DNA from: Pavona decussata
Taxonomy: Eukaryota
Direction of reading: 5' to 3'
DNA length: 64,000 nt
Assembly (NCBI GenBank): GCA_977016875.1
Contig: CDRNST010000123.1
Coordinates: forward strand, 3,906,001-3,970,000
A program made the translations under genes and the position numbers. The stretch's first letter is position 1. Each line of letters begins with the position of its first letter. The notes below the pieces were generated by a model. That model did not search any database and was not told the DNA's origin. It was given only the letters and a program-made list of their open reading frames with translations. Of the stretch, positions 1,154 to 59,574 are shown one piece after another.

Positions 1154-4100
1154 CTTTAGAAGTTGCTCCTTGTTTCTCGTGACTTCATCTTGAACTCTTG
1201 TTGTCTCTTCTTTCTTCCACTGATCACGTTCTTTCTCCAATTCCTCTGTGTACTGCTTCTCAAGAGATGACCGCAGTTCATCCACTAATCTGGCTTCACT
1301 CTGTAAAAACACATCATATCACATATCTAATGACTGCCATAAAGCTACCTTCGTCAAGATTTCCCCTTTAAACACAGCGTCGTGATAAATACAGCTGCTC
1401 TAAGACTCCCCTTCACACAAAAAAAATTGATCAGCTTGAACCTGAAAATACAGAAGTGTTCAAGATGCTGGGAAAAGTCGCTTTCAGTGGGATTAAAGAA
1501 GGAAGACTGATCTTTGAATCAAGTGAAGTTACTAGACTGGAAGATTATGGGCTGCAAACGCTCAGTAATCACTCTGATTGGCTGTTACAACAAATGCAAA
1601 CAACAATACAACAATCAGGATTTGTGGTAAAACAATGCAACTGTACAGCTCGTTTCTGGTCCTTCTTTTTCATGCAACATTACTATTACATCTGACGACA
1701 AAAACTGGCGATAAAAAGGAACGACGTTTCGACCTCTCTAAGGTCATTTCCAAGTTATAAGAGAGTGATTGAAAGTTAACGTTTAATTTTTCCTACATAT
1801 GCTAATTTTCAATCGCTTTCTTACAACTTGAAAATGACCTCAGAGAGGTCGAAACATCGTTCCTTTTTCTCGCTTGTTTTTATCGTCAAATACCTATCGA
1901 AGAAACTTCTTATAAGATTAATATTACACCAAGGAATGTGACCTTGATGTTTCAGTGCAAATACTTTCAGAACCACGTGTACACATGACCCTGGACTTGA
2001 CAAAAGTCCGTTTGTTAAAACTTTGACCCCAAATGTCAAAGAACAAATTCTCCTATCTTGTCCCCATACTTTTCTTATAAAAATACTCAGGAGAAGTTAT
2101 TAAACTATCAAGAAAATTCACCTTGGGTGATCATATCCTTAATTCCCATGACCTCGGGGGTTGAATAAGCATTGTTATTATAAGAAGAAATTTTATGCTG
2201 TTAGGTCATGGATCATGAGCAACAAAGTTGTTAAACACAAGCTACAAAGGTGCAAGAAGTCTGCCTGGGCTGTTCAAACTACTTTCCCTCAATTGGTAAA
2301 TTCTCACCTCAGACAGAAGCATTTGTTTCTCCTTATCAAACTCTTCTGTTAACCTCTGTTCCAAGCCACGACTCTCTTCACTCAGCTGAACATAGCATTC
2401 CTTTATCCTGATCAACTCTTCGCTGTTTTCTTCCAATTCTTTCCTGCAAAAAAGTACTGTCTTCTTAGACGTTTTCAGTCATTCCAGTTATTTTAGCTTA
2501 GCCAGTTTTGTCTTCCTTTTTACCCAGGACGATCCTGAAAACAACGCTTGCGTGAGATTGCCTACAGGTGAGAGGCAATTACACTGTAGTGTATCATTTT
2601 GCTTTTGAACGGTAATAATGCTGAAACATAATTATAGTTGTACTACAGAGATAAAGCAACCATTTCAAGATAAGCTGTACACGGTTGCACCCTGTCACAT
2701 GAGCCTGTAAAGTTTACACAATTACCATAAAGGCATTAAAATAAAGACAAAACTATGTCTACATCTTTAAAAATCCTCAAACAGATCAAATCAGAAAGCA
2801 CTATAATTCCAAACAATGCAGACTTTTCATGACGAAAAACAAATACTACAACAACAGCACAGTCAGGTGAGACTCCAAGTGACACATGTTGATACTCTTT
2901 CATGTATAATATGCAGCCACCAGGGTAGCACGGAAGGTGCAGTGGTGAGAGCACTCTCTTCCCACCAATTTGGCCCGGGTTCGATTCCCGGACTCGGCGT
3001 CATATGTGGGTTGACTTTGCCATTGCTTCTTGTCCTTCTCTGAGATGTCTACTCCAGGTTCTCTGGTTTTCCCCTCTCCTTAAAAACCAGCCTTTCCAAT
3101 TTCTAATTCGATCTGGAATCTGAGGGCTACAGGTTTGTTAGTCATAACAGACTGTCAAATGTCACCATCGTTAAAACAACAAAGTTGATTATTTTTAGAA
3201 AATGAAACAACTGAACTTTTCCCAGAGTATTGACTTGCGAGAATGAGTCACACATACTTTAAATTTTGCACTATCTGCTGATGTTCCTGGTTCAGTTGAT
3301 CTCTTAACAAGTTCTTGGAATCTTCATGAAGCTGAAGGCATGCTTCTCTGCATCTAAGAAAAAAAGACAAGTTAAAAGTCTTTAAAACACCTAAACCATC
3401 ATGGACAGGGATTTGATTGAGTTTATTTATCAGGGCCTGGTTGTTCAAAGAGTGGATAACTCTATCCAGTGGATAAATCTCTATCCAGCGGATAAAATGT
3501 ACTCCAACCAATACATTTTATCCGCTGGATAGAGTAATCCACTCTTTGAACAACCGGGACCAGCTGTGGAAATCAACTTAGGGAAATATGTTATGAATTT
3601 TAGTAAGTTACTTTTCTATGCTGATTCTTTTGTCTTCATCAAATTCTGCAACCATCTGAAATTAAAATATAAAACAAATCAAGTACGTTTTCAAACAAAT
3701 AAAATTTATTGACCTTACACCACAGGTTGAATACATAGGATAAAATACCACTAAATTACCAGCAAGCAATGAAAGGAAATCTCCACTCCTGAAAGATATA
3801 TTATTGACATAAAATTGTTTGAAATATTTTCTTTGGAAAACACAGATAAATGCTTCATATAAGAGTAACCGGGAAATTATTATAATATTATAATTTCTTG
3901 TCCACATTTGCTTTTAGTTTTCGTGAGTGTTGCTGTTCAATTTATTGTTCCCTACAAAAGAATCTTTGTTTTTGTTTTTTCATGTGTCATATAATATACC
4001 AAAATGACAGCCCATACAGCAACCAGTGTAATATTAATTTTATAAAGAGAAATTAAGTGATACTCCTCTCAATTTTCTTTGTAAACTGAAATGTCCTCTC

Positions 4101-16900: not shown

Positions 16901-19900
16901 CATTTTTGTCCCTCAGTTTTGGCGTCGACATTTCTTTATCATTAGCTTACAATTAGCTTTTAAGAATCTTCTTAGTGAGCGTGCTAAAAAACCTTGGTTA
17001 ACTTTTAATCGTGGATTAACGTTAATCGGCTTTCGAAACACCAGGCCCAGGAGGTTGGTAAGTTAGAGAGGTCTCTCCTCTCCAAACAAAGTGTTCTAGG
17101 ATGTGTGACTTTTATCACTGATTCAGTAACCACAAAACACATACATAGTTTTCTGTATTATTTGGCTGCTTTTGCAAGAAGAAAATTAAATGTATTAAAA
17201 TCTTACTTCTTGTTCCCTTTCTTGGTCTTCTTTTTCCAGCGCCGCTTCTTCCTCATCTTCTAGCACCTGCAAATAAAGATGCATTGAAGACTGAAGATAA
17301 AAACTACTGCATTACCAGATTGATCAGTTGCTGGTCGTCACAGACACTGTTTGAAAGGTTCAGTTTCAGTGTTTCATGTAGGGGAGGCTAAAATTATTTT
17401 TTAAAGTGGGGGGCTCTAACACATCATGTATCTCTGTTTTTACTCCCACAGAACTGATAATTTGTAGCACTGACCTACAATTACACCTGTAACGAAATCT
17501 CAAGGGTCTTTTTTAATCAGTAAGGTGAAAACATGGAACACACCCCCTAAGACAATCACAGATAAAAAAATCCCTCTGAATTCAAAAGAACTCTCACACA
17601 CAACTGGGAGCTTTGCCAAGCCGACAATGCAACCTACCCTTTATTACATCAACACCACAATTCAATAGCATCACAGCACAAAAAAGAGTGAATAAACGGC
17701 TGATATGAAATTGAGCCTAGATACAAGAATAACGTAACTAGGGAACTACTTGAAACCTACAAAAAACTCAAAAAGCCATGCAGGGCGGGTGTGCGGGGAA
17801 GGTCAGGCAATGGAGGAAGGCAACAAAAACAACTGAACCCTGAAACGCCATGTGACCTGAAGACCCCCCGTACACTCAATCCGTACTCCCAGCCGTGTGT
17901 GAGAAAAACGTTTTCTGCTTCTTTTGTTCCAGTCAGCCAGAGGAAAACCACACTTCTTCAAATGTCAATGATATTTGTTCAGTCCTTTTTGGCTGGCGAC
18001 TTTGTACTTAGTTATATGTTATTATAATGTACATTATATCCTTACTATAATGTTAATTTAGTAAATACAGTACTCCATTTAAACCAGCCCTGCTGAAATG
18101 GCCATCTCCGGTGTAAATATTTGTTCAACTAAATGATAAATAAATAAATTTTAATCCCAGACACCTCATTTGCTCACAAAAGGAGGCATTTAATTTTTTT
18201 TTTTTTTTTTTAAGATAGGCTCATCTCAAGTCATTTAAAATGAAGGACGACTGAAAATCCACATTATTTACATGATCAAATTGAAATACGTATTTACTGA
18301 TTCCTTGGTCCTCAAATTTGAGATCATGTGATTATTTGTAAGCTACAGAATGAAATTGGTGGCAGTTGAAACAGGGTCATTTTAAAGTCATTTCCATTGA
18401 TCTCTGTGACCAGTAATCATTCTAATAAAATTAGACAGTATCACAAACCATCCACCATTGTTGTTTTTTCTTGTCTATGAGAGCAAAATAATAATTTTAT
18501 GTCATCCAAATAGGCCTTATCACGGTTTTCGACACCATTTTGACGGGTAGGCAAACACGTCTGAAATAACAGTGTTTGTATGGGAATCCGATGTCAAATA
18601 ATTTTCATAAAACATCGCTTCTGAAAAATTCCTGAATTGGAAACTTTTGGAACTAGGGTAAGGATTTTAAGAAAAAAATTGGAGTGATCTAGCTGTGCCA
18701 GAAAGCGTCCAGTCGTGTTTTGAACTTTCCATACATTTCCCTGTATTTTTTTCCCGCAAACTATTTTTAGTAGCAGTTCACGGCCGGTTTGCTATACAGA
18801 CAAATGTATGGAAAGTTCAAAACACGACTGGACGCTTTCTGGCACAGCTACATCCCTCAATTTTTTTTTACTTAAAATCATTTTCCTTGTGCCAAAAGTT
18901 TCCAATTCATGAATTTTTCAGATCCGATGTTTTTTGAAAATTATTTGACATCAGATTTCCATATAAACACTGTTATTTCAGACGTGTTTGCCTACTCGTC
19001 AAAATGGCGTCGAAAACCGTGATAAGGCCTATTAAAGTACATGCACTATTGCTAACTGAAACACTCAAGGAAAAACAAAACAAAATTTCTGAAGACTTTG
19101 AGATTGAAAGAAATAATAATGCTGGTTACTTATAGTATTTCAGTTCAATATAGAAAGAAAATTTAAGATAGATTAGGCTGTGATATATATCACAGGAGTC
19201 TATCTACAGTATTTGGTGCGCACTTTTGTTTTTAATCAAAATTGTGAACAGCTGCGCTTGCTGGATTAGTAATTTCCTGTGTTATCATTAAGAAGACTAA
19301 ACTTTTTTAATAGGCAGGGGGTATACAAATATTAAAAAAATACTAAAACCTACACTGTAATTTCATTTGAATCATTCACAAGAATTTGTCACTACAACTG
19401 AAGTTTTCACAACGTCATAATGATAGAGTGAAAAAAATTTAAAAAGCTTGCCCTAGTTCCAGTTTAAAACAAACATGCACAATGAAAAATAAATGCTCAT
19501 TTTCAGCTTGGTAGAAGTTTATTTCATTACACGGTAAATTTGGTTAATTTTAATTGACTTAGGCCACAAAACAATTTAGCAAAAAGGGAAAAAAATTAGC
19601 ATTTTTGACAGATGTGAACAGTGATATCATGCAAAATACTATAATTACTACAATGCAAACACTGGGATGATGTTCAGCTTATAAATAAAACACAAACCAT
19701 CTGTGAAAAAAACTCAAGGGATTTTTCAATTCAGCGTGGATGGTGATCACAAGATTACACTTGGAGTATTAAAGCTTATTTCAGGACTACACGAAAATCA
19801 AACTGGGGAAAGATGAATTCCTAAATGTTTTGACTCTTACTGTCATATCCGATAAAGTGAAGAAAGAATTTTGTGTATTGTAAATACTGTAATTAGGGTC

Positions 19901-20596: not shown

Positions 20597-23500
20597 ATGA
20601 ATTGGTGGAGTAATTTTTATGTAGGTTTTTTTGTAGCCTTGTTGACATTGATTGCCGTGGAGTGTACGGAGTTGACTTTCGAGTTGGAAGACAACGCTAG
20701 GCAGTGTTTCTTCGAAGATTTCAAGAAAGATGCCAAAGGAACGCTGGAATTTCAGGTCAGTAGTCATTTCGTCTTGGGTATGAAGACTGTAATTTTTTTA
20801 GATCAGTTGTTTTGTGCCCATCATTTGTTCATTAACCAAACCATATTAACTCTTACATCTTGATCAGTTGCTTGTGTCCACATGTTGTGTACCGGCTTCC
20901 ACTGCTAAACAATTAATATCGCCGTTGTCCATGTTTTGGCTTATTTCCTAAACGTACACATTAGTTAGTCAGAACTAAAGGGTGCGGATTTTTCTTCAAT
21001 GTTTTAAAAAATATCATTATTTTGACAAAAGAAAACTGTTGCAATTGTCAGATGGAAGGTTTTCACTAAGAATTACATTGAGTTAATTAAACTTGCCGTG
21101 GAGAGATGGTAATAAGCTTAAAATCCTTGGGATTACACAACTTCATAAGGGGAAGAGTTTGCATTTCATGGAATATACACATACAAAGTGTATTTAAAAA
21201 GAAGCTCCATGAAATGAGATTATCTTTCACTCTTTCCACTAAACCAGTCTTCAAACAAAATATTTCATTATGCACTGTACATTATATTGAAAAGTGTGGA
21301 TAGAGAAATGCAGAGAGATCTAACATTAGAATAAAGAGTTTGTTTCCACACTGGTAACTGGGCAGGACTTGAAAGTGAAGGAGAAAATTTCATTGCATTC
21401 AAGGTCATGAGTTGATCTCCTGCCAACTGGCTTTGTTGCAGTCACAATCTACATCCTAAAGCCTGGTCATACTCTTGCCATAAGCACAAGCATACCTGCA
21501 TTAGAAAAATTGTGCATGAACCAGTTTAAGATAAGCATTAGCAAAAGCCCCCGAAAAACTGCTTTCCTTTTTATGCTTGTGCTTATATCAGGGGTACTTG
21601 TGCTTATATCACAACCATGCATCAATGTGAGGTACCGTATTTACTCGTGTATAAGTCGACCTTTTGTGACCAAAAAATCAGCCCAAAAAATCGCCCTCAA
21701 CTTATACATGAGTCATACCCAAAAGCCTGACCAAGAAACCCAAGAAATTAGCATAACAATTACTCGAAGTCCATTAGGAAAACCGAGTTTACAAAACCAG
21801 TTCTAATTGTGTTCGAGTATTGACAGTTTTCGGTGCATTCTTCGTCAACAAAAATGGAATATAAATAAATATTACGTGGTTGAAATACAAACCTACTGGA
21901 GATGTTTCTGCTGTGTCTTTTTAACATAGAGCAGACATTTTTCTTAGAGCTTCGCTGCTGTTTACGGTGCTGAACGTTCGTTTTCATCAAACGATTACAG
22001 GAGCTTAGTGACCTGGCAAATGCTGTTGTCTCGCGCGGGCTTTTTTGTTACGCGCGTGGACCAATTATATAACTGTAACCAAAGGCTTGTTATGCTTGTT
22101 ACGCGCTCAAGCCAATTACAATGCAGTACACGAGCACATTTGTTTACTTTGTTGTTAGCGACCAGAAAAGGACCAATTACGTTGCAACTATAGGTTAACA
22201 AGAAAACAAAACTTACTTGTACGTGTTTTAGGCTACATTGTTAACAAGGTCTTGACCACGTTACTTCTCACCTGATTACGAGTTTACAAAGATGTCCTCA
22301 AAACGTATGAAATATTCCGCTAAGTTTAAGCTACAAGTCGTTAAGTTCGCACAGGAGTCAAACAACTGTGCAGCAGGCCGTGAATTCTGCGTCAATGAAA
22401 AGTTGGTTCGCGACTGGCGAAAGCAAGTCGAGAAACTGAAGTGCATGCCGAAGAACAAATGCAGCAACCGCGGGAAACCGTGCCAGTGGCCCAAGTTAGA
22501 AGACAAGCTTCTCTGTTGGATTGAAGAGCAAAGGCAAAGTGGCTACATTGTCACCCGCAACATGATCATCATCAAGGAGAAGGCAATGGCTGCTGAATTG
22601 CAGATAACCGGGTTCCTGGCTTCCAACTGCTGGTGTACAAACTTCCTTCGCCGGAAGAACCTTGCTCTTCGACAGAAGACGAAAATGGCACAAAAGTTCC
22701 CAGAAGATCTCGACCAGAAGATCACAAGCTTCCACAGCTACGTTATCAACCGCAGAAAGAAGGAAAATTACGAACTTGTTCACATTGGGAACATGGACGA
22801 AACTCCTGTCTCGTTTGACATGCCATCGGCCAGAACCGTCAATGCAAAGGGCGCAAAAACCTTGTTGGTTAACACAACTGGCCACGAGAAATCACGGTTC
22901 ACTGTTGTACTTGCGTGCCTGGCAGACGGGACAAAGCTAAAAGCCATGGTGATCTTCAAACGAAAGACCATGCCAAAAGAGAACTTTCCACCTGGAGTCC
23001 TCGTACACTGTCATCCGAAGGGGTGGATGGACAAAGCTGGAATGAAGCTGTGGGTAGAGAAAGTATGGCGATCACGACCCGGCGGTCTTCTGAGAAAGAA
23101 AAGTCTCCTTGTTTGGGACTCCTTCCAAGCTCATCTTGTCGACCCAGTGAAGCAAGCAGTGCGCCAGACAAACACCGACATCGCTGTAATCCCAGGTGGT
23201 TTAACCAGCATTCTTCAACCGCTAGACGTTTCCCTAAACAAGCCTTTTAAAGATCGTCTCCGTGAGCGATGGAACAACTGGATGATCGAAGGCCAGAAGA
23301 GCTTCACTCCTGCTGGAAACATGAGGGCAGCATCGCTTCCCACTGTATGTTCGTGGGTCCTGGATGCCTGGCGTAGCATTCCGGCCAAGATGGTAGCGCG
23401 ATCCTTCAAGAAGTGTGGCATTTCCAATTCGATGGATGGCACAGAGGATGAAATTCTCTGGGAGGAAACTGAAGATGTACCTACCACTTCAGTTGATGAG

Positions 23501-26500
23501 GAGGATGAAGATGAAGGCGTTTATGCAGACCACCTAACATCAGAAGAGTGGCAGAACTTGTTTGGCGAGAGCGATGATGAAGAATTCGCCGGCTTTGAGT
23601 GAGCAGGGACTGTGCTTACTCTACAAACGGCTCCTTTAGGAGCCACCAAGTTAACAAAAGTCAATGACCAACAAAGAGTTGTGTTTTTATTTATTCTCTT
23701 TATTTATTTCCTCCCCTGCCCTGTTCTTTCTTTCTTTTTCTGCGATATTGCCTCGCGCGCGCAAACTTCGGAAAGCACGTGGAGCTACCTTAGTTACCAG
23801 TACTCCTCAAATTTGTAGTTTGGTTACCAAGTTTTCCAAGATGGCGGTGTTTTCATCGAGCGATCCTTTGAAGCTCTTCGGCTTTCCTTCGGTCTTCTTA
23901 ATCTCCTTTCAAACTCAACATTGAGATAAAGGTTAGTTAAATGCAAGAAGATTTCATTTTCAATGCTATTTACTTCAAAATATTGTAAATTACTTCTCAA
24001 GTAAGTCAACGTGCTCGTATGTGCGTAAATCCGAAAATCGTGATGATATAAACAAGTGCTAATAAACTTCACAGCACACGATTACATTTTGCTCTGCAGT
24101 TTTATTTATTCACCATGTTTACAGTACATTCTCAGAAATAAGAGATTAACTTTTTGGGAAACTTCTTTTGCTCTGAAATTTTCTTCTTTAGCCAGAAATG
24201 ATGAAAATCCGATTTTTGACCTTGAAAATGGGGGGTTGACTTATACACGAGTTCGACTTATACACGAGTAAATATGGTAAACAAAAGAGCACATCCGCCC
24301 TGTGCTTGCATTTGTCACCCTGTGATTCTGCTCTTGTAACTAGTGGGATCTGGTGTGAGGTATAGTAAGCATAAGCATAAGCACAAGGAAATCAGAAGCA
24401 CAGCACATCTTATGGTAGTCCCCACACTGTCAATCATTATTATTTTATCCATTTTTTGTGCTAATCGTTATACTTTTGTCATAACTATGAGCCAGGCTTA
24501 GGTAAATATGTCACATTGGAAACTGTTCTTCGTTATTTTGTCAAATATTAGTATTCATACTGTTCTGATCAACACTGGGATGTACTATTGTGTGCATGTT
24601 TGGGAAGGTGGACATTACAGTGTTTGGTACACTCTGTGGTTCTCTGTTCCCTTTGGCTACTTACTCTTTGTGCACAGTGATGTTTCTGTTTTAATCAAAA
24701 TAAACTTATCTTTCCTGGTCCTATTTCTTCCCCCTTTATTTACATTTGACTATAAAAAATTGCGATAAAACATTTCGTAAAAACATTATAAAAAGGTTAA
24801 AAAACACGACGTTTCGATGTACATTAATCGCAGGCAATTTAACGACCTAAGTAATAAGATTGGCCCCATATTGCAGCCAGTTTTTGTTAGTAGGAAATTA
24901 GAACATGATCTTAAGCCTAGGGAAGTTAAGCCGTCGATTGTGAATCAACAATGCGTTGTTTACTATTTTTCATGTGATCTGTGCGATGCAGATTATGTCG
25001 GCTATACAGCCAGACACCTTTTTCAACGCGTTGCTGAGCACAAGAACTCGGCAATTGGCAAACATTTTCTTGAAGCTCACGGGAGCAAACACCTATTGAA
25101 TCAGGGCCATTTTAACATCTTGAGAAAGTGTCAGAGCAAATTTGATTGTTTGGTATTTGAAATGCTGTACATCAAGAAACTTAAGCCTTGCTTGAACACT
25201 CAAACGGACTCTATACGTGCGAAACTTTTTGTTTAACCGGTAGCATTCTTCAATGCTACTATTTTAATTAATATCTATTGTCCATTTTTGTATTTATAGC
25301 CGCAATCTTGCATTTTTAATTTCACTTGATAATGATGTAATGTACATCGAAACGTCGTGTTTTTTAACCTTTTTATAATGTTTTTACGAAATGTTTTATC
25401 GCAATTTTTTATAGTCAAATGTTTTTCTAAGTCTTTGTTTATTTACATTACATGTACAAAATAAAACTGATACACTCATTGTCATTTATCTTCAGGTCAT
25501 TAGCGGTGGAAACTATGATGTAGATGTAGTTCTTTTCGATGAGAGTGGTAAAACTCTATACAATGTTCAAAAGAAACAGTACGACAGCTACACATTCACA
25601 GCTCAAACTGAGGGAGTTTACAAGTTCTGCTTTAGCAATGAATTCTCAACGTTTAGTCACAAGGTGGTGTACTTTGACTTCCAAGCCGGCGATGAAACTC
25701 CACTAACCAAAGAAATGGGAACTCACCACACTGCTCTCACACAAATGGAGACAGCTTGTGTTACTATACATGAAGACCTTAAGGTTTGTAAATTTTTTAG
25801 AAGAAAATTATTGCAAAAGATACATTGTTCATAATGTATGTTTACTGCATCTTATGGTACCAATTTTTTTTTGTCTAGATGAATTTTTGACATCTGTTTG
25901 AAATGTTTGTGGTTGTGTGCATTTCAGCTGTCTGAACAAAACTTGAATTTGCAGAATGTTTCTCAAAAAGATTTCAGAGCTGTCTGCTCTGAATCTCAAT
26001 AAGAGCCCTGCGTGTTACACTATAATTATCCTTTATTTTCTTTTGATGGGCATTTGCCTAATTACTGGAGAAAAGTAAAAGATTGAGGAAGCATTTCCTT
26101 ATTGTGCTAACTTTTTGGATTCCATGCTAAAATCTCGTCACCTTCAGAGCAAGTTTAGCCCAAACCAAGTGCTCTAAGTTTGTAGCTGTTGCTAAATAGC
26201 TGTAGTCATTTCCAGTGCAATCAAGAATCAGAGGGTCAAACGTTCACCCCTTGTAAGACTGCTATGTTACTCCTCAGAGACTTTATTGATCATAATTTTT
26301 TTTCTCTGAGTTCTTCATCTGCGGGAAATAAATTTTAGAGGACCCTAATGGGCACCAGCCAGCTGCCCGTGAATGGCAGCTGATTAGACTTTGTCCATGT
26401 AATGTCATCGTTCATTTATTTTTAAATTATTTCCATTTACTACTTGACTGCACATCAGTAAACTCTAAAAAGGTCAGAAGAATTTTAAAATGCATAGTAC

Positions 26501-27343: not shown

Positions 27344-28733
27344 GTGTTGAAGAGATGATTGTTATAAAGAACAGAGTTATTCCAATTTGTTATAGCAACC
27401 ACCTGAAGTCCGCCAGATCACAAGCAAGTAACTGTTCTCAAATGCAATGAGGAGGGACTTGTTTTATTTTCGTGCTGAACTACCGGTAGTTGGTCCGAAT
27501 AAAAAACTAGCCTTTTTGAAAAAGCACAAACTGTTTTTACTCCTAAAACTTGTTGTAAATTGTAGTGAATGACCATTGGTTAAATATCAGCAATGTTGGT
27601 ACAAAATACGTTATGCTTTGGAAAGAAGGTTGCTAAACTTTCATTGACAAACAAATTTTTGTTATAAAAGCAAATTATCAAGACCAATTGGTTTTGTCAT
27701 TGTGATAATTAATTCTGCCCTTTATTCTTGTACAGCTTGCAATCAAATTAGAGCAAGTTATTTTATTGTTTCTTGTGACACAGTGATCATTGTAACATTC
27801 TTGGGACATTTTGTTTTTTAAAAGAAAAAATCGTTTGTTCAACCTCAGAAAGATTACATTCTTCTGTTTGGTAATCCAGGGAAGATTTGCATGGTACAAC
27901 TTTTGCTAAAGACACCTGGAAAATGGGGAAACATTGTGAAAGCATTGGTTTTCAGATACCCTTGTTTTTGTGTGTGCACAATGTTGATAGTTGAAGTCAA
28001 ATGTTTTCTGCTTCTGGGAAGCAAATTTTGCATCTGTAATGTGCAGTCAATTACAGCTGTGCCCATCACACACCCTCCCCCCCCCCCCCCCCCCACCTCC
28101 TCGGCAATAATGGGGCATTTTCCCACACTGTCTATCCCGGGGATCAGGCATTAGCCTTCTACCCAATTACCCCAGGGCACGTGACCATCTGACTTTTTTA
28201 ACTTCACAGCATTGTCACTTCTTTTAATAGCCAATTCATCGGCAAATATGGTAAGTTTCTGATTGAATACGTCTAGATAGGACATAAATGGGGGTCAAGC
28301 GGAGGGGGGGGGGGGGGGTGGGGGCATGGGAACAGCTGGAATTGAGTGATGCATAACATTAAAAAAACAATTAAAAAATTTCTTAATTTACCACAACAAT
28401 GTTTTCTTACTGGCAAGGATGTCTGCAACTATCACCAGTAACACCATAGCACATGTAAAGCTGTTCTTATACTTACACTGTTTTGAGTGTTCTGTATGTG
28501 ACTTACATTGAGCGCAAAAGTTTTGTAGGTTTATGTGCATGTTTAACAAAACTTACACATTTTATCAATCACCGTTGGCAAATTAACCGGGGTGAATATG
28601 ATTTTGGGATGTTGCCAGTAAAAAGTTGTATACATTGTACCATGTAAATTGGCCGTAACAGAGAACTACATTGTATTTTGTACCAATGAAAGCTAAATAT
28701 CGAGTTTGCTCATGTTCTGCTAAAAAAGAGAAT

Positions 28734-31700
28734 AAAAAAACATTACCTTTTGCAGTAGTCAATACCCACCTTCTCCTTCTTTTAAAGAGTAAGATTTTTC
28801 CAGAAAGAGAGATTTTTGCGTGTGTCTGTGCAAGAAAATGGTGTGGCACGCTACACCCTGCAGGATCAGCAAGAGATTTGATAAATATACTGGCCGAAAA
28901 TCTTCAGTCTTATCAGTAGCTCAAAGAGTAGGTAAAGGAAATAAATCTGCAGCCTGAAAAATATGAAACAAGTTAGCAACTGTAGAGGAGTTTTGCAATA
29001 ATTTATTATACATGAATGGAAATTAGTCTGAGGTCGGCCTAGTTCTGTTAAAGCTACCAAATCTGAAACTGATTCCCAGATGGTTAATCCAGTTTTTGCC
29101 GATAGTAATAAATGCCTAAATGCGGGACCAGAGTGCGTCCAATTTTCATCCCGTATTTAGCCGTTAATTAACAGCTAAAATGTGAAACAATATTATCTTC
29201 AGAGCCGATTCTTAGCCGTGAAATAACAGCGGAAATTGAGAACAATATTATTTACAGAGCTAACTATAAGCCGTCAATATTAACGGCGAAAATTCATTGA
29301 AAGAGCACTCAACTGACCGAAAATCTTCCTAGTCTAATCACCTGGCTAAAATAATTGTCACGTATAATATAGAGATTTTTAACAACGAAAGTTGTCATCA
29401 GTTGATAACAGAAAGAAAAACAGAAAAGGAAAATTTATTTTTTTGCCTTTTATGAATTTTGAGACCATCGTTCCGTAATGGCGAACCACCGGACACGAAA
29501 CATAAGTTTTATGGTCCTCGGCGTAGCCGCTCGTTTGGGTCGTCACGCAATCTTTCCTCGTGACGAGCCAAAAGAACGTTTTTTGTCTTTTAGTCACCAT
29601 CCGCGTGTGGCTCACGTGTGGATCAACACGTTTATCTGCTTGGTTTCAAGAGAGGGAGAGCTGAGAGAGAACGGGAGAGTGGTTGTAATGTCAAAATCCG
29701 ATAAAGAAATGTAAGAAATGGTTCATTGCCAGAAAAAAGAAAAACGGCGTTAGTTGGCAACGTTGTTATGTTTAAGATCGTGAAGTTACCGTACTGATTT
29801 CAATATATTGTTCATTTGCTCATGATAAAATTAGAAATCAGAATACGGCTTTGACACGAATTACTCCGACTATGTGGGGTGATGGATTGAGAACGAAAAT
29901 GGTTTGATTTGAAAATATAAGCTAAAAATAGTTACATTTATTAAAGAGGGATTTTGACTTTTTTGATGAAAATGGTACCACGATACCTTCCGGTATTAAA
30001 GTAATTCGAGAACACTCACAGAAAGGAATCAACTGAATTCTTGAAAGGACAACTTGTGATCTGCTCTAGAGTGTTTTTTCTTTTTTTCTGGGTGTTTGAA
30101 ATCACCCCTAAATCCCTGTAATACTTGCCAGCACCAGTCCGATCTGCCTGGTTGAAATCATTGTTATTTTGTTGTTTCAATGGGCGGTGTTGTGGTCATT
30201 GACGTTCAGCTTTTGTCCTGCGTAAGGAACCTTAAGTGAGTTTTCTTTTTTTCTTTTTTTATGATTAATTTGCCAATACTAGTTTTTGTTGAGTCGACCA
30301 AAGTCCAGACCATATGTTCAAAGTTTCAGATGTAAGGTTGAATATTACCAAGAGAGGATGAGGTCATCCTCCCGTGATAATATTACTGATCAGCACGGTC
30401 CGAACGTCCATCAGTTGGTCATGCGAAGGCATTCAATAATATGGAGGAAGAAGTTTTACGCCCTCGCGAGGCAGTTATTACTAGAAGAACACAAAGTCTC
30501 AAGCGAAGGGAGAATGCGGTAAGTACGATTATTTTCTGTAATAATTTATGTGGCACTCGCGCGAGAGCCAACGTTATTAACAAGACGCTGTGGGAGCGTA
30601 GAAATGTTCGTCCGGACGGCGTATTTGTATGGAGTTCCATCTCAGCCAAACTTCGAGGTTTATATTTTCATTCTTGTGACTAACTTCTTGTATTTCAGAC
30701 TGCATTTGTAGTGACCTGTAACTGGGTTCTTAGCGACTCTTTAGGAAGAAAATTAAAAAAAAAAACATTACCTTTTGCAGTAGTCAATACCTATCTTCTC
30801 CTTCTCTTAAAGAGTAAGATTTTTCCAGCAGGAGAGATTCGGAATAATTTTTGGTGTGTCTGTGCAAGAAAATGGTGCTGCATGCAGGATTTGATAAATA
30901 TACTGGCCGAAAATTTTCAATTTTATCAGTAGCTCAAGCAGTAGATAAATGGAATAAATCTTCATACTGAATAAGACAAAAGAAAAGAGAGCAACTGCAG
31001 AGACCTTTTACAATGATATACATGAAGGGAAAGTAGTCAGAGATCGGCCAAGTTCTGCTGGGTCCTGTTGAAGCTACCAGACCTGACAACGATTCCCAGA
31101 TAATGTCAGTTACTTCAGTGGGTTGCATGGCAAGTAACGGCTAAAACCTACAGCTGAGTAGCTTTGTAAGTGACAAATCCAGTTTTCGCTGTTAATTAAT
31201 GGATAAATACGAGACCAGGGCAGGGTACGTCCAATTGTTATCCCATATTAAGGCGTTAATCCACAGCTAAAATGTGAAACATTAATATCTTCAGAGCCGG
31301 CTTTTAACCGTGAAATGATAACTTTAAGAAAGAGCACTCAGAATAACTCACTGATAACTAATAAAATTCTACGAAGCTCAAGTCGTCGCCTGGCTAAATT
31401 TTTGTTATATGTATATACATATATAGAGATTTTTATCAACGAAATTTGTCATCGGCTGATAACAGAAAGGAAAACAGCGAGCCACCGGACACGAAAACAA
31501 GAGTTTTTTTAGACCTAGCGAGGCGCAAAGAAAGTATTTGTGTCTTCCGGTCATGAGTGACTCACGAACCAACACGCCGCCGAGCGGTTTATCTGCTTGG
31601 TTTCAAGAAAGCCGAGAGAGAACGTAAGTAGTTATAACATCAAAATCCCGCAAAGAAAATAACGATAAAGAAATATAAGAAATGGTTCATTGCCAAAAAA

Positions 31701-32730: not shown

Positions 32731-33875
32731 AATTAAATAATTTTTCAGCAATCAACAAACAATTAAATATTCTCCGTCAAGTCCTTAATGCCAGCAATTT
32801 CGTTTCTGAAGCGTGTGTTGCAATACACTAAGTAACGATCGAGTAGTTATTGGTCATCAGAGGAATGTAAGGATTCCAAGGGCCGTTTCAAATCAGGCAT
32901 TTAACATCGCGTGACCGTACTTTAATAACTGTACATCATATCAGCTGTGTTCTGTATACCCAATACATGAAGTACAAGAAATAGATTTTGTCATCAAAAA
33001 TCGTAGTAAACAAGAATTTTAGTCTTGTGGTGATGCATGGAAAAAAACTTCATTCCGTCCCAAAATATGTTATACAGTTCACGAGGTCTTACTTTGGAAC
33101 TGACAATTTTATAGGCGGACCTCGCAATTAGATTAAAGTTCCGGCTGATTTAAGACAAACAGTACTCGAGCCGCTTCTTCATGAGTAATTTCGTCCTCGT
33201 GGGGATTATAGGGCCAACTAATGTTGATTTTAAGGCCAGGATTATCAACAGTCTTGGAAGCAATCGACAAATTTCGACTACGCCTAAAGAAGGGATTTTT
33301 TTTCAGTTTCTAACGATCGTAATAGCGAAGTGCACAGGAGTCACAAATATAGCGCACGAGTCACCGCCGACTTTGACTGAATCTGCCGCGTTTGCTTCTC
33401 AAATTTGCTTATAAACTTTTCTGCAGGCCACGCAGTCAAGCTGTAATCGGGTTTTAAGTGTTGCTGAAAGTTGAAGAGTTTTAAGAGGTGTAAAAAGTGT
33501 TGTAGGTTTGGCCTCATTCCTCAATCAGGATCAAGCCAAATATTCTGTGAGCAGGATGCAAGGGGTAAAATATCCTTCAGGTTGTCGTTAACAATAACTC
33601 CAATTCAGTGCTACACTGTCGCAAATGTTTGGGATCAAGCTTTAAGTTCAAGATAAGCCCTAGAGTCTCCCCCTAAGCTTTCCAGAACAAAACGACAAGG
33701 ATCGACCCTGTTTCTAAAAAAAAAAAGGCAGATAAATTTTATGCACGCTCCAATCTGTGGTTTTACTTTATTAGAATACTAAATGACTTGAATTTAATGT
33801 CAGCTTCATTTAACTAGGCAGAGCTGTAAATGTTAATCCAAGTTAATCAATCCACCAATTCTCCTGGATAAAAGC

Positions 33876-34266
33876 CAGGGGCACCCAACGGATCGTTTCG
33901 GTAAATTATCTGTTCGGAAGGTCCTTAATCCCCTCCAATTTTCTGAGGGGAATTTTCACCTCGAATTTTCGTGATATGGAAAATTTAAGGCCTAGTGTTT
34001 TCGGATTGATAAAAATGTCGTTTTGAGTACCGAAAAAAGGTCAGCTAAGATTTTCGGAAAGGAAATAAGACCTAAGGTTTTCGGGAAATGGACAAAAATG
34101 CCCTATAGTTATTTCGAAAAGACCGAAGTTCCACTAGAATGACCGAACAGATAAAACAGTATTAAAGTGCAGCCTAAAATGAACCTACAGAGCTTTAAAG
34201 GCACTCCAGATAGCCTAAAATAGCGTTTCAAAGGATCTGAGAGAAAACTGTCGTTGGGTGCCCCTG
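33876..34266 (+). mobile_element. ~390-bp MITE, CAGGGGCACCCAA TIR, 6-bp TSD (copy 1)
   Basis: TSD AAAAGC on both sides. Confidence 0.92.
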
Positions 34267-34748
34267 AAAAGCGGCTTTTGATCTTTTCTCTACAAGTCTT
34301 TCATAGACGGCTTGCACAATGTCTACAGAAACCTTAGGAACCGGATTAGACCACGAGCGCGCTGAGTATGGCAAAGACAAAATCTCCCGAGGTTGGCTTC
34401 CCCCTCCCCACAATTGAACCTGTTACTTTCCCGCAATATGGATCCCTTTCTAGACTACGAGTAATAGTTAAAGTAGTGGTAATAGTAAAGTATGGTAAAG
34501 CGAGGGAACCACGCGAGTGCACGCGAAAATTGCCTCCCGAGAGGGAACGCGCGCGTCGCGTCTCCTCGCGTGAGGCAAGAAAACTAAGGCCAGCAAGGAA
34601 ACTAAGGGACATGAGCCCGCCTGCTGTGAACAATGGACCTCAGGCTAGAAAGCTCTCTTTTTGGGTCAGCCGCGAGAGGATTGGGGCCTCTTGTGGCTGA
34701 CCCAAATAGAAACTAATGAATTGAATCTAGAATAAGAACAGTTTAGGT

Positions 34749-36342: not shown

Positions 36343-36503
36343 CAAACTCGTACCCAGAGTCCTCAGGCTCTTTGGCCAGCGGTTTGTCGCCAGGAGAGCC
36401 CTTACGGGGCAGCCGATAAAAAAAATTATAATTTAATTCTCCAGAGTCTCTCCTGGCGCCCACCCGCTGACCAAAAAGCCCGAGGACTCTGGGTGCGAGA
36501 TTG
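36343..36503. mobile_element. Foldback MITE with 9-bp TSD (Mutator-like)
   Basis: CAAACTCGTACCCAGAGTCCTC...GAGGACTCTGGGTGCGAGATTG; flanks CATTGTTGA / CATTGTTGG. Confidence 0.8.
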
Positions 36504-38074
36504 CATTGTTGGATGACAATAATAATCAGGAACTCTATGAAGGCTGATACAAATCTGTCAAGGACAAGCACTATTTGGCTAGCTGTTTTTGTTAAAACAC
36601 TTTATATATCAACCATTTTACATTGTTTGAATCAAGAAGAGAGTGCCACTCTCTTGTGTCAATTACGGCATTCCCCTCGCTGGTGAGGGAGACTCCCATG
36701 TTTGGCCTTTTACGAGGGCGCCATCGTGCCGCTGGTTGTTGCTGCGACTTTAACGGTGGTCTTTTGTAAAAGCTAGCGTGTGCGTTTGGCCAACTGGGGG
36801 ATTTCAGTTTGTACTTAAACCCGGACTTAAACCATCAAATTAATGAAAATTTTCATACATGCATGTTGCACTGACTTTGAGCATAGTTAATTGAGGGAAT
36901 GGTCATGAAACCTTACCATGAAAACAATATGGTTCTGCAAGTGTTGGAAGAGCCGCGACCGTGCACAATCCTTTGTTATAACGTTCACTACAGCTGAATA
37001 TTTTAACAGGAACGTTTCTATTGGTCAGTTTCTCGAACACATTTCAAAATCTATTGTGGTTTGTGCACGGTCAAGGCCAAAAATGTTAACAAAAACCTAT
37101 AACACTAAAAGAAGTTTGTCAGGTTTCATAACCATTGCCTTTTATAACCATGCTTTGAGCAAACCAGTGTTTCGCAAGTTAGGTTTCAGTTTTCACCCCC
37201 CTTGTTAATAAATATTCGTTGAAAACTAAGGTGACCTCAATTCCTGACCGTGAACCCCTCAACGGTAGCATTCTCACAAGATAAGGCCGTGGATGATCAA
37301 ACCTTTTATCCAAAACTGACTGGGGCGCTCGACGATAATCTGGGAAAGGGGCCCCCAAAAGGTGCCAAAGTCTCCCTTTGTGTTTCTTTTAAAACCTTCT
37401 GGCTTGTTTTTCTTTTTTCGTTACTTATTTGTTTATTCAAGTACCTTTGCTAATATAACCTTTGTTTACTTATTTCCATGTATGTTCGCTAGCTAATATT
37501 AATTTAAATGTATCATATCTTTTGTTAAGTATGAGATCAGGTGCCTAAACTCTTTTTAACCCCATGGCTTTTCGTTGACACACCTCCACATTTTTCAAAC
37601 CCCAGTTCCTTGCATTAACATTGTTAATTAGTATGTGGAAATAAAGAAACTTGAAACTTTAAACCCTAAACTTGCTTTTAGGCAAAGAAACTTCTGGCAG
37701 TGGGCATTTTAATTTGAACACCGCCTAAGCGGTACTATACCACGAATTTGAACTCCTAAAAGATCCGTTAACTTTGCATGGGACTGAGTACCTTTGGGAA
37801 TTTGACGTGAATGTTAGCAGGCGGGAAACTAATGTTCTCACAGGCAGACGAAAACTGTGTCCAAAGGAAAAACCAAAAGTATTCACTATCTACAAAGTAA
37901 CGTAATTCTTTCTTCACTGTTTGCATGGGTTCAGTAGATGAGGCTTCGAATTTTCGTATCGGCAAGATTCGGCCACTGTCTTCTCTCGTTTTAACGCCCT
38001 TTAAAGCCGCAGGGTAGTAGAGGAAATGTGCACTGACGGTTAACAGTGTGGTTTAAAAGATGAGTCAAAGTATG

Positions 38075-42728: not shown

Positions 42729-43269
42729 TTAAGCCCGGATATCAACATACATGTGATTCTCCTCACTGTTCTCTGTGTATTTCTTTCAGTATTAGTTGGG
42801 AGAATTTGTTTTACAATTAAAACATTTGATCTTTGGTGATCATTTTCTTTATTCTTGCAACCTGTGGGTCTGGTATTGTAAGGAGAATTTAGATGCTGGG
42901 GCTTAAAGGGATAGATTATTTTAACCATGGCAATAAGAAGCATCTTACCCCGGTTAAATGATGCATTTATAAGAATGGCATTAATCACGTCATTGCTTTG
43001 CTACAGTTATTTCATCATTGTTGGTTGTCTCAGTGCATGGCAGATGATGGTCCCCTGCCATTTATTTATATTTATTATTTATAAAAACAATATTTATTAA
43101 AAAATGGAAGAGTAACCACAATTCACAAGCATTTAAAATGAGCCATCCTCTGGTTAAAATATTTTTATGTTAACTTATTATTTAGAACAGTAAGTTTTTG
43201 GAGTCCTGTCTGACAGAGATGTTGACAATATACTTATGAGATAGGATGGTGTTTTAAGCCTGAATTTAT

Positions 43270-43520
43270 TGTTGACATGGACATCATCCAAGACCTTAAA
43301 CCAACTTTGAACATGCAAACTGACTCCATCCCCGCTAAGCTATGTATTTTACATAATCACAGAGAAACTAAATGTCTATTATATTGTTTATTGTTTTCAC
43401 TCATATAAATTCAAACCACAAAGAAACAGCCACTTTTGCCTTGATAATGATGGAAGTAACATCAAAACGTCAGACAACATTAGTTTGAATTTTTCTACTG
43501 AGATTTTTCAGTAAATCACT
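43270..43520 (+). mobile_element. Degenerate Penelope-like 3' fragment
   Basis: Encodes IIQDLKPTLNMQTDSIPAKL, resembling [20 protein letters not shown] at the end of ORF 24817..25236; followed by a decayed hammerhead-like motif at 43438-43474. Confidence 0.65.
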
Positions 43521-44822: not shown

Positions 44823-47800
44823 ATGTTCAAATTATATAAAGCAAACAAATCTGGAAAAACCTCCAAGGCAACAAATCACAGTAATGGAGACTCCCACACA
44901 TCTGACGGCACTCCACACAGGTATGTTAATAATGCTTAACTCTCACGTTTATGTTTAGAGAGAGAAGAGGGGGATAAGGAGTTACAACACCTGACAGCTG
45001 CGTAAGTGAACAGAAGGCAATCTTTATACCAGGCATCTCTAAGAGATGCCTGGTCCACTCTTCCCCTTAATTACTCCAGACCCCTTCTTCCCCCCCCCCC
45101 CCCCACCCCCCGATGATGCCTGCTACACTGTTGGCAGGCTATATCATTGCTCAGTAGCCTTACATACACTTGATTGAAGAAACATTGTCAGGGCAGATCG
45201 TATAAACCATGAATGACATCTGCAAGACCCAATGACTTTCTGGGTTCAACATTTAACCTATGAGCTTCTTTGCATTATCTTCTTGTTAAAAAATTAAAGT
45301 ATGTGCTGTTGTTAGGGCTTAAAATTAACATATTTCTTGTGGACAAATCTAAAAAATGCAACATATCCACATGCTGATTAAATCACCCCATAATTCCATC
45401 AGGTTGTTTACAATTATTCACACCTTGCATGGGACAACGTTTTTGCGATCAACTGTATACCTTGCCTCGGCCATTTACTAATAACTGCTATCTGAGGCTG
45501 CCTATAATGCCACTTGCTGTCATATGGATGTTTGCATGTAATCTCATCTAAAACATATTTATGTCACCAATCCATGAATCAGCGCCTCCACTGTACACAG
45601 TAAAAAGTTTGTAACGCTTATATTAAATATTGATTTCTATTAAAAACACAGAACTGGAAAACAAAGAGATCTAACCAATATTTTGGAAGAGAGCAGTTCA
45701 GTTGATGAACCACGGAGCTTTGAACAAGATGAGCAGTACCTGGAGGAGTGTTTGAAAGCACTTGATGGAAACCCAGATGAACTGCAGGTAAAAAAAACAG
45801 CTATGAAGTACAACAAAGACACCTGCAACCAACTAAAGTTTGCAAATAATGGGCAGGAGAACTTAAGCTGATTTCTCAGTCTCTTATAAATTTGTGGAGA
45901 GACAGTCAGGGGCACCCAACGGCAATTTTCTGTCAGATCCTTTGAAACGTTATTTTAGGCAATCTGGAGTGGCTTTAAAGCTCTATAGGTCAATTTTAGG
46001 CAGCACTATATAATATTTTTATCTGTTTGGTCATTCTAGGGGAACTGGAGTCTTTTCGAAATAAGTAGGGCATTTTTGTCCATATTTTCCCGAAAACCTT
46101 AGGTCTTATTTCCTTTCCGAAAATCTTAGCTGACCTTTTTTCAGTACCCGAAACAACATTTTTATCAATCTGAAAACACAAGGCCTTAAATTTCCCATAT
46201 CATGAAAGTTCGTGTTGAAAATTTCCTTTAGAAAATTGTAGGGGATTAAGGGCCTTCCAAACAGATAATTTACCGAAAGGATCCGTTGGGTGCCCCTGGA
46301 CAGTGTTGTACAGTGATTCCTTTTGATTACATGTGCTAGTTTGAATGTAATTCCAGAAGTTCATTTCAATCTCCTTTACAAGGCATCTGGAATGAAATGA
46401 TTGTTTGTTTATATTTACTTTGCAAAATGTTTATCTTGCAGGTGGGGGAAGGAGATTTAGAGGAGTATGATTTTGATGACTACAACTCTATTGCCAGCAC
46501 TGCGTCTCTTCTTAACATCCATGCCGAGATAACGCGAGAAGAAAAGAATTTTGCGGCAAGAAGTCATTCACAACTTTCAACCAATGACAATGCTGCATTC
46601 CAGGCATCTCAACCAAGAAGTCCAGAAACTGTTATAAATGGCACAGATAGATCCCAGGTTCACCTCAGAGAGCAACTCTTAAGAATTTCCAAGGTGCAGG
46701 CATCCATTTCAAAAGTGAGAAACTGGAGTAAACTTGGTGCAAATGCTACACTGAACAAGGATGAATGGAAGGATGTGTTACTTGAAGCTGCCCAAGAAGG
46801 GGACTTAAAAAGAATGGTAAGGTTGCCTTTTTTAAATCTTGATTAAGTTTTGCTTAGTTTTGGACAGTCAAGCACAGTTCTTAAATTACTTTGGATGCAA
46901 CATTGATTTGAATGGGCCTGCGATAGATAAAGAAACTATCTCATTGACTGATTGATTTTACTAACAGCCAACAACCAACTGACTACTGACTGACTGACTG
47001 ACTCACTCACTGACTGATGTCTTTGAATGAGTTTCTAACTGATTCATTCATCTGTCCATTCATTTATTCATTCACTCACTCAGCCAAAATTTCCTTTAAA
47101 GTATAAAAATTGGCATGAAGAACACAACTACCTAGGAGACTTGCTTTATGGGGCAATTAAATACAGTAATAGCCCACGTATAAGAACCTGAATTTTTCAA
47201 TAATTTATTTAGCCTAAATAGGTTCTTATATAAATGGTACTTAAAGCAAATTTAGGCTACCAAGGTTCTTAAAATAGGTTCTTATATATATTATAAATAT
47301 CATCTCATAATACAGTATAATGGCAAACACAATAGACATACAACATGCTACTTAAGCTTGAAAGAAAAAAAAAGTTATGTCAAGTTACTTTTAAATAGAT
47401 GATGATCTTACACTTTCACAGCAACCCTTTCTGATAAGAACCTAACTTAAAATTTTAGCCTAAATAGGTTCTTTTGTGGAGGGGGCTTAAAATGAAAATT
47501 TTAGCCTAACAGGTTCTTAAAATCCAGGTTCTTATACGTGGGCTATTACTGTACCCTGACATGTGCAAGCAGGTAAAAATTACACTCCTTTGCCCAGTGG
47601 TAAGAGACACATACATGTTCAGTAAGCTGGGTGGAACGAGTGATTTGTTCATCACTTATTTGCAATGCAAGAAGGTTAAATATAATATTCCTTTGTCCAA
47701 CAGCAAGAGGCATATGGCAAGCTGGGTGGAACAAGTGAACTGGCCATCAGAATAACAGACTCGCTTGCCAACACGGCTTTACATAAGGCTGCAGAAGCCG

Positions 47801-58001: not shown

Positions 58002-59183
58002 TGGCGTAATTTGGTCTTACGTAATATGCAGTAGCAGGCAATCCGTACAGAAAAATGATAAGGGGTCAGTTTCACCTTACAAAGAAACCGTGGTGCTGCG
58101 TTGGTGAGATAGTGGAAACGAAATCAATATTTGATTTTATCAACTGAGCTGATAAGATACTTTCGCTACCGTAAAGAGATCAAAGAGATGACGTTTCAGG
58201 CCCGAAACTTCAGCTCTCGAATCTCTTTACGATAAAATAGTTGATAAAACCAAATAATCTAAATGATTGATAATGAAATTAAGCATGCACTAAAGCGATA
58301 AGGCTATACACGATCCAGAAACCTTCCACTGAATACATCGAACATAAGGAAGATAAAAAAGTACAATTTGCACAACAACTTGGTAATATGCGTTGACATC
58401 GAGATCAAATTAAATGCCCAAAAACCATACCCTATGGAGGAAAACGCACCTAACAACTTATATGGGAGTATCCTTCATCTTTACCTTCGAAAATAGCATA
58501 AAGGTTTTGGTTTTGAGATCGTCTACCATTTCATTTATGGCCCCCTTAGATATAGTTTATCAAAAAATTTATTGTCTTTGCAATATCGTGACTGAGTGAA
58601 AACTACGAGGATGTCAAATGCCCGCGGTGTAGACTAATATCCGACTCCGGGACGGACAATACTCCATAATGCCCCGGGGCGGCCGGACACTGGCCGGAAT
58701 TAAACTATGAGCCAAAAAAATGTTTCTAATTTTTTTGAAAATATTAATTCTAAGTAGATTATTTTAATCGTTTTTAAGTTAACTTGCAGCCGTTATCAGT
58801 TACCGTCTATATTTCAGCCGCTATGTTGTTTCAGATCTGCGTCGTGGAAATACCGACTCAGAGAAAATAGGGTGCAGGGATTGATGGAAACTAGGACAAC
58901 CCCACAGCACGGAGGATGAAGCAGTTCTCCACACAGACAAAAAGTTTATCATTAGACTGATTTTTAATTGACCACTGTAAATTCAAAACCAGTAATTACT
59001 CTGGCCGATCACAACAACCAAAAACAGCGCAATGAACTACAACCAGAACTCGAAAGCAAATCCATTTAACCGTCTCCAAGCGTGGGAAAACGCGTGCGAG
59101 CAAACGGCATGATAGGTTTTACATTTGTTTCTAGTTAGTGGACAAGCTGACTCGAGTGTTTTTAACCAGTTACAGAGTAAAGT

Positions 59184-59574
59184 CAGGGGCACCCAACGGA
59201 TCGTTTCGGTAAATTATCTGTTCGGAAGGCCCTGAATCCCCTACAATTTTCTAAAAATAATTTTCGCCTCGAACTTTCGTGATATGGCAAATTTAAGGCC
59301 TAGTGTTTTCGGATTGATAAAAATGTCGTTTCGGGTGCCGAAAAAAGGTCAGATTTAAGATTTAAGATTTAAGATTTTCGGAAAGGAAATAAGACCTAAG
59401 TTTTTTGGGAAGTGGATAAAAATGCCCTAGTAATTTCGAAAAGACTCAAGTTCCCCTAGAATGACCGAACAGATAAAAATATTATAGCGCATCTACAGAG
59501 CTTTAAAGGCACTCCAGATAGCCTAAAATAGCGTTTCAAAGGATCTGAAAGAAAACTCCCATTGGGTGCCCCTG
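59184..59574 (+). mobile_element. Same MITE family (copy 3), nested in an older repeat
   Basis: TSD TAAAGT on both sides; internal AGATTTA slippage expansion. Confidence 0.92.

Follow-up and report, generated by a model that had tools for sequence, protein, structure and literature searches.

What is the short motif that recurs, with changing stems and a nearly constant core, at four sites of a 64,000-nucleotide (nt) stretch of Pavona decussata DNA (contig CDRNST010000123.1 of assembly GCA_977016875.1, forward-strand positions 3,906,001 to 3,970,000), and does it act for the host, for a mobile element or for neither? This whole stretch is called the window below, and positions are counted from its first letter. 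A first-pass annotation had read the motif as an atypical hammerhead ribozyme at loci related to Penelope. In our analysis, the four sites are very probably copies of the hammerhead motif carried in the pseudo-long-terminal-repeats (pseudo-LTRs) of Penelope-like retrotransposons, in a minimal variant that has already been published and whose cleavage, dimerization and role we infer. This variant has a U3-A8 pair in place of C3-G8, one unpaired U between A9 and G10.1 and no loop 3, and its helices comprise a helix II of 6-7 bp and an open helix I of 3-4 bp. What carries this reading is the sequence itself, its place in the element, the covariation of its helices and its conservation across a lineage, all of which are observed.

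The geometry proposed for the four sites reads as described, and a 28-nt descriptor recovers all of them with at most one mismatch; with up to three mismatches allowed, its matches in the window number six, whereas shuffled sequence yields 1.39 on average and none of 100 shuffles reaches six. Site 1 (25323-25359, plus strand) reads CAC, UUGAUAA, U, GAUGUA-AUG-UACAUC, GAAAC, GUC and GUG, that is, a helix I of CAC and GUG, the core UUGAUAA, the bulged U25333, a helix II (25334-25339 with 25343-25348), and then GAAA and the ACGU palindrome, with the predicted cut between C25356 and G25357. At site 2 (1825-1861, plus strand), the parts are AAC, UUGAAAA, U, GACCUC-AGA-GAGGUC, GAAAC, AUC and GUU, and at site 3 (1756-1720, minus strand) they are AAC, UUGGAAA, U, GACCUU-AGA-GAGGUC, GAAAC, GUC and GUU. 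Site 4 (43438-43474, plus strand) is a decayed U3-A8 motif, with A in place of G12, two mismatches in helix II and no helix I left.

The 5′ core box, (C/U)3-U4-G5-A6-N7-(G/A)8-A9, is present as UUGAUAA at 25326-25332 and as UUGAAAA at 1828-1834, and site 3 individually departs from it, with a G replacing the essential A6. The 3′ core box, G12-A13-A14 with A15.1, is GAAA in sites 1-3 and AAAA at 43465-43468 in site 4. The palindrome formed by positions 15.1-15.2-16.2-16.1 is ACGU in sites 1, 3 and 4 and ACAU at 1852-1855 in site 2 (G16.2 to A), and there is no loop 3, which bears out the earlier description of a minimal Penelope-type hammerhead with a palindromic stem III: the motif is a minimal type I hammerhead whose helix III is loopless. 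Because sites 2, 3 and 4 each bear at least one disabling change, site 1 is the sole intact motif in the window, and it is identical to the motif found in both pseudo-LTRs of two full-length copies of the element elsewhere in the genome (loci L073 and L074). The window contains no canonical CUGANGA minimal motif, and a covariance model built from the four copies (R1) finds no additional copies within it.

To see how far the variant extends, we searched the window's own genome (602 Mb) and used the reversed pattern as a control. The pattern UUGANAA-U-N13-19-GAAACRUC has 2,653 exact genomic matches compared with 42 in the control. When the bulge nucleotide is left free and positions 3 and 8 are allowed to vary, the U/A state has 2,895 matches (control, 224) and the C/G state 1,392 (control, 80), compared with 266 for C/A and 196 for U/G (control, 106 each). 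The two paired states therefore predominate, the mixed states lie near their controls, and many of the mixed matches listed resemble single mutations of either paired state. The nucleotide between A9 and G10.1 is U in 2,653 of the 2,895 raw U3-A8 matches, or about 98% after subtraction of the control, and it is A or U in the C3-G8 copies, so that both the U3-A8 core and the U inserted before stem II, as originally proposed, hold across the genome. Among motifs sharing the GAAACRUC 3′ box in this genome, the U3-A8 core is about twice as common as the canonical one.

The compensatory changes first noticed in stems I and II reappear as strong covariation, rather than none, in a set of 44 distinct U3-A8 copies (the four of the window and 40 from the genome), collected with a pattern that left helices I and II unconstrained. 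In this set, 83.6% of the paired cells are formed compared with 60.7% in shuffles, none of 500 shuffles reaching the observed value, and the covariation score, 0.635, falls to 0.231 with shuffling and to 0.05-0.15 if partners are displaced by one to three columns. Both sides change in nine of the ten helix pairs. Helix I has three well-supported pairs, each with four pair types, and a fourth pair formed in 39% of the copies; five of the six helix II pairs change on both sides, 88.3% of the helix II cells are paired, and helix II occurs in at least 14 different sequences that pair throughout. The G10.1-C11.1 pair is retained in 43 of the 44 copies and N7 is unrestricted, both among these copies and genome-wide, while the C at position 17 was imposed by the search pattern. 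This partition into kept and variable positions is the one expected of a hammerhead and not of a generic hairpin.

The place of the motif in its element is clearest in L073 and L074, which share the same layout: an inverted motif, a sense motif, an 826-amino-acid (aa) frame with RVT_1 (31.9 bits) and GIY-YIG (23.8 bits) domains, and a second sense motif 2,580 bp past the first. The hammerhead lies within the 141 nt that separate the stop codon of each unit from the ATG of the following unit, and the first ATG follows the predicted cut (after C17) by about 21-22 nt. The 826-aa protein carries GLKF at residue 196, DKG at 275, YVDD at 528 and CDLC at 740 followed by histidines, and it has no linker zinc finger of the CX2-5CxxC form. 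Penelope/Poseidon-type elements are recognized by GxKF/Y and DKG motifs, an endonuclease CCHH and the absence of a CX2-5CxxC linker finger (PMC8557442), and by these features the protein points to that type. The Hydra clade, in which CCHH is missing, DKT stands for DKG, and an RWK motif and a CxCX5C linker occur (PMC8557442), was considered and rejected for this family, since CxxC with histidines and DKG are present and neither RWK nor CxCX5C is.

Penelope open reading frames (ORFs) at loci with the U3-A8 core share 42-95% amino-acid identity with the 826-aa protein, and those at loci with the C3-G8 core only 23-31%. Copies with an intact 826-aa frame have the variant in each of their pseudo-LTRs, and dozens of copies with 99-100% identity carry it too. 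By these comparisons of sequence, it marks a single Penelope lineage, within which it has been kept across deep divergence, and its retention alongside ORFs that have diverged to 42% identity argues for selection on the variant core. The lineage includes an apparently active family, as suggested by the dozens of identical copies and the intact frames. In a tandem array at a further place (G000:C2:3454449-3470914, loci L020-L025), a short Penelope-derived unit that retains part of an endonuclease (a remnant with 46% identity) is repeated, and five or more U3-A8 motifs of a single family follow one another on one strand at intervals of about 2,108 bp; this array could be a retrozyme-like, non-autonomous derivative.

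Site 1 belongs to a 691-bp insertion at 24747-25437, in which a 5′-truncated body comes after an inverted tail of 80 nt. It is flanked by an exact 12-bp target-site duplication, TTTATTTACATT, at 24735-24746 and again at 25438-25449; since the last 5 nt of the duplication also prolong the inverted repeat, the left boundary is ambiguous by 5 nt. The inverted, 5′-truncated tail copy (24747-24826, minus strand) is the reverse complement of 25338-25417 and has only the 3′ half of the hammerhead motif (24805-24826, minus strand), and the perfect inverted repeat as a whole spans 24742-24826 and 25338-25422. The body (24827-25437, plus strand) is assigned to a young Penelope-like element by its Pfam GIY-YIG match, its amino-acid identity to the L073 frame and its pseudo-LTR alignment. 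It begins with the C-terminus of the GIY-YIG endonuclease (24829-25233, stop codon at 25234-25236, plus strand; 27.7 bits against a cut-off of 22.6), whose frame is 100% identical to residues 692-826 of the L073 protein. After the stop come an 86-nt spacer, the hammerhead motif and 81 nt of the next unit, including the ATG of the element at 25378. The same protein segment is found at more than 80 genomic places with 97-100% identity, several of them within intact 826-aa frames. Penelope-like insertions are recognized by truncation at the 5′ end, where an inverted truncated copy adjoins, by a variable 3′ tail and by a target-site duplication (PMC8557442), and site 1 fits this signature.

Sites 2 and 3 are the two arms of one 227-bp insertion with a 24-nt spacer, built in the style of site 1 from an older family. 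Its inverted arm (1690-1778, minus strand) contains the motif with A6 changed to G (1720-1756, minus strand), and its sense arm (1803-1916, plus strand) the motif at 1825-1861 in which ACGU has become ACAU; the inverted repeat formed by 1690-1778 and 1803-1891 is 87% complementary. A possible 11-bp target-site duplication, identical at 10 of 11 positions, is found at 1679-1689 and 1917-1927. The family has about 40 genomic relatives with 74-91% identity, one of which (L099) has a decayed GIY-YIG remnant upstream. Site 4 comes from an old repeat family of about 190-220 bp with at least 40 genomic relatives of 74-88% identity, several of them arranged as inverted pairs. A remnant of the Penelope endonuclease C-terminus lies 90 nt upstream of its motif (43268-43348, plus strand), at the spacing seen in site 1; the tblastn match to residues 800-826 (56% identity over 27 aa, E = 0.004) is weak alone. 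On this evidence, sites 2/3 and site 4 appear to be decayed tail fragments of related Penelope-like elements, so that all three loci trace to such elements, in agreement with the relation first assigned to them. The four window copies are best read as dead by-products of insertion, one truncated and young and three decayed and old, and none would be expected to act for the host.

The view of this motif as atypical, or as the mark of an unrecognized family, does not survive comparison with the literature. Cervera and de la Pena described the U3-A8 covariation in Penelope-like elements in 2014, with about 1,300 matches in Schistosoma mansoni. They also reported conservation of the G10.1-C11.1 pair, a nucleotide left unpaired ahead of helix II, a loopless helix III with a palindrome at 15.2-16.2, a long helix II beside a short helix I, motif pairs on opposite strands and a model in which two copies form an intermolecular helix III of four pairs (PMC4209133). 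Since the variant was published then, the window sites are ordinary transposon remnants, and they carry little weight as a discovery because both the variant and the logic of the dimer are already in the literature. The closest known counterparts are the Cercyon elements of S. mansoni (PMC4209133), which share with the motif analysed here U3-A8, a long helix II with G10.1-C11.1, a short helix I, the lack of loop 3, the palindromic 15.2-16.2 positions and the location in pseudo-LTRs, and which likewise exist as thousands of heterogeneous, mostly solitary copies, with opposite-strand pairs 100-700 bp apart. The host differs, the Penelope lineage may differ, and in P. decussata the variant is about twice as frequent as the canonical core and its bulge is U in about 98% of cases. 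What is new here is the excess of the variant over the canonical core, by about 2:1, and its link to a single Penelope lineage, one of whose families seems to be active. Minimal hammerheads are also numerous in the coral Acropora millepora, whose genome has more than 6,000 type I hammerheads; apart from 1,508 canonical ones, these belong to the minimal Penelope/Terminon type (Cervera and de la Pena 2020, PMC7229834).

Within the P. decussata genome, the canonical C3-G8 minimal hammerheads of Penelope-like elements and retrozymes have the same architecture and the same GAAACRUC box (the 1,392 matches above), and they differ from the U3-A8 lineage in their core, in a bulge that is A or U and in linked ORFs with only distant similarity (23-31%). 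The extra residue has a parallel of its own in a group of hammerheads that are reportedly of type III with a closed helix III, unlike those analysed here. As far as these cases are recounted in PMC4209133, which cites De la Pena and Flores 2001 and words them as 'some canonical HHRs' (hammerhead ribozymes), they have a single unpaired nucleotide at the same position, between A9 and G10.1. In the Poseidon element of Anolis carolinensis (PMC11167929), a pseudo-LTR hammerhead similarly lies at the start of the ORF, although its core is C3-G8 and its ATG comes ahead of the cut, whereas here the ATG lies beyond the predicted cut. The Anolis ribozyme cuts only when the protein of the element is present; changing C3 or G8 singly stops it from cutting, and swapping both restores some of the cleavage (PMC11167929).

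Any cleavage, dimer formation or role in transposition of the P. decussata motif is proposed by analogy with these systems. Because helix III consists only of the A-C-G-U palindrome, one copy cannot close it and two copies must pair. The partners would be either both pseudo-LTR motifs within a single transcript or motifs on different RNAs, and the protein of the element may assist, as in the Anolis case. In this scheme, which we take as the likeliest, tandem or read-through transcripts would be cut down to single units, each beginning 21 nt ahead of the ATG.

Several observations weigh against this reading, the first three against a strict need for cleavage. Every insertion analysed here includes sequence on both sides of the cut site (81 nt on the 3′ side at site 1), so the template that was copied must have been uncut at that motif, or religated. 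The published minimal hammerheads of Penelope cleave poorly in vitro (PMC4209133); the Anolis element inserts in vitro without needing cleavage, and no reads ending at its cut site turned up in RNA-seq (PMC11167929). Folding of the monomer favours a rod in which UUGA pairs with the 3′ box, and cofolding of the homodimer favours an alternative, extended duplex of the helix II palindrome, neither of which is informative for a hammerhead. The position 3/8 counts lack phylogenetic independence: since the U3-A8 core belongs to one lineage, a single ancestral switch could account for the association. Finally, the Rfam hammerhead models (type I, type III, HH9, HH10 and type II) do not score the motif: neither a window scan at gathering thresholds, nor permissive scans round the sites (E up to 10), nor permissive scans of five genomic copies gave a hammerhead match. 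Weak matches to MIR821, MIR8706 and mir-304 at 1684-1898, far under their gathering thresholds, were rejected as artefacts of the long inverted repeat.

The Rfam result also bears on the suggestion that canonical searches under-count this class. The models do miss the motif, as had been anticipated, but the minimal architecture is as much the cause as the changed core: the canonical C3-G8 minimal copies of this genome are missed too, which means that the models do not cover the minimal class, whatever its core, and we take their silence as a limit of the models rather than a sign that the motif is not a hammerhead. In practice, about two-thirds of the GAAACRUC-type minimal hammerheads in this genome would escape a descriptor limited to CUGANGA, or the Rfam models.

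The alternative that fares best takes the motif as a structured RNA signal instead of a catalyst, its hammerhead-like boxes having been inherited and then maintained for binding, either as a site near the start of reverse transcription that binds or positions the reverse transcriptase/endonuclease protein or as a 5′-leader element just before the ATG. Insertions that always span the cut site would suit such a signal, as would the protein dependence of Anolis cleavage and the fact that insertion in vitro does not need it (PMC11167929), the low activity published for related motifs in vitro (PMC4209133) and the continued proliferation of Penelope-like clades that lack hammerheads (PMC8557442). 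A mere binding hairpin, however, would not require the features that conservation here follows exactly, namely, core boxes that are kept, a free N7, a fixed G10.1-C11.1 and a Watson-Crick pair between positions 3 and 8, and we regard this alternative as distinctly unlikely. Far less probable still is that UUGANAA is merely CUGANGA decayed by C-to-U and G-to-A transitions in dead copies, and meaningless by itself. Both departures from the canonical core are indeed transitions, and three of the four window copies are visibly decayed, but the idea is already contradicted by the excess of the double change (2,895 matches) over either single change (266 and 196, with controls of 106 each), by U3-A8 cores that lie in each pseudo-LTR around intact 826-aa frames and that recur in the dozens of 99-100% identical copies, and by its sharing among families diverged to 42% protein identity. 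Co-option of the copies by the host, as intronic ribozymes processing its transcripts, would be in keeping with the host introns suggested in the first-pass annotation, yet it has next to no probability, given that old copies have changed without restraint even at essential positions (A6 to G, G12 to A and G16.2 to A) and that site 1 has one complete sense-strand motif only and therefore cannot form a dimer in cis.

With the pseudo-LTR hammerhead retained as the preferred reading, the U3-A8 core and its fixed U bulge might, beyond a neutral swap, reflect tuning of the ribozyme's function within one Penelope lineage, towards slower cutting, say, or strict dependence on the protein of the element. 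We consider such tuning doubtful; if true, it could let the lineage control the timing of RNA cutting. The young family of site 1, with many identical copies and intact frames, offers a convenient natural system for asking whether a U3-A8 hammerhead cleaves as a dimer or depends on its own protein.

The window also holds features apart from the Penelope-like insertions. A pogo/Tigger-like transposase ORF (22292-23668, plus strand; 436 aa; DDE_1, HTH_Tnp_Tc5 and BrkDBD) is followed, 22 nt past its stop codon, by the histone-type 3′ stem-loop GGCTCC-TTTA-GGAGCC-ACCA (Rfam Histone3, 35.4 bits against a gathering threshold of 34). The end of this ORF together with the stem-loop recurs at least six times in the genome with 91-100% identity, and the stem-loop alone is present at no fewer than 40 other loci; the joint recurrence indicates a multicopy DNA transposon whose transposase gene has a histone mRNA 3′-end signal. 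A perfect 72-nt inverted repeat with a 75-nt spacer (52569-52640 and 52716-52787) is 81-86% related to a hairpin at 36343-36508, and the two (52569-52787 and 36343-36508) look like a small fold-back family or one resembling miniature inverted-repeat transposable elements, overlapping a 156-aa ORF (52188-52658). A repeat of about 400 bp occurs in three copies with 86-94% identity, two of them direct (33871-34271 and 59179-59579) and one inverted (45906-46299). A tandem segmental duplication of about 2.0-2.1 kb, 84-91% identical, covers 28724-29423 and 30749-31477 and contains internal 55-nt repeats at 29129-29279, and nested inverted repeats at 18509-19033, with 170-nt arms at 91% and 75-nt arms at 92% identity, make up a long AT-rich fold-back.

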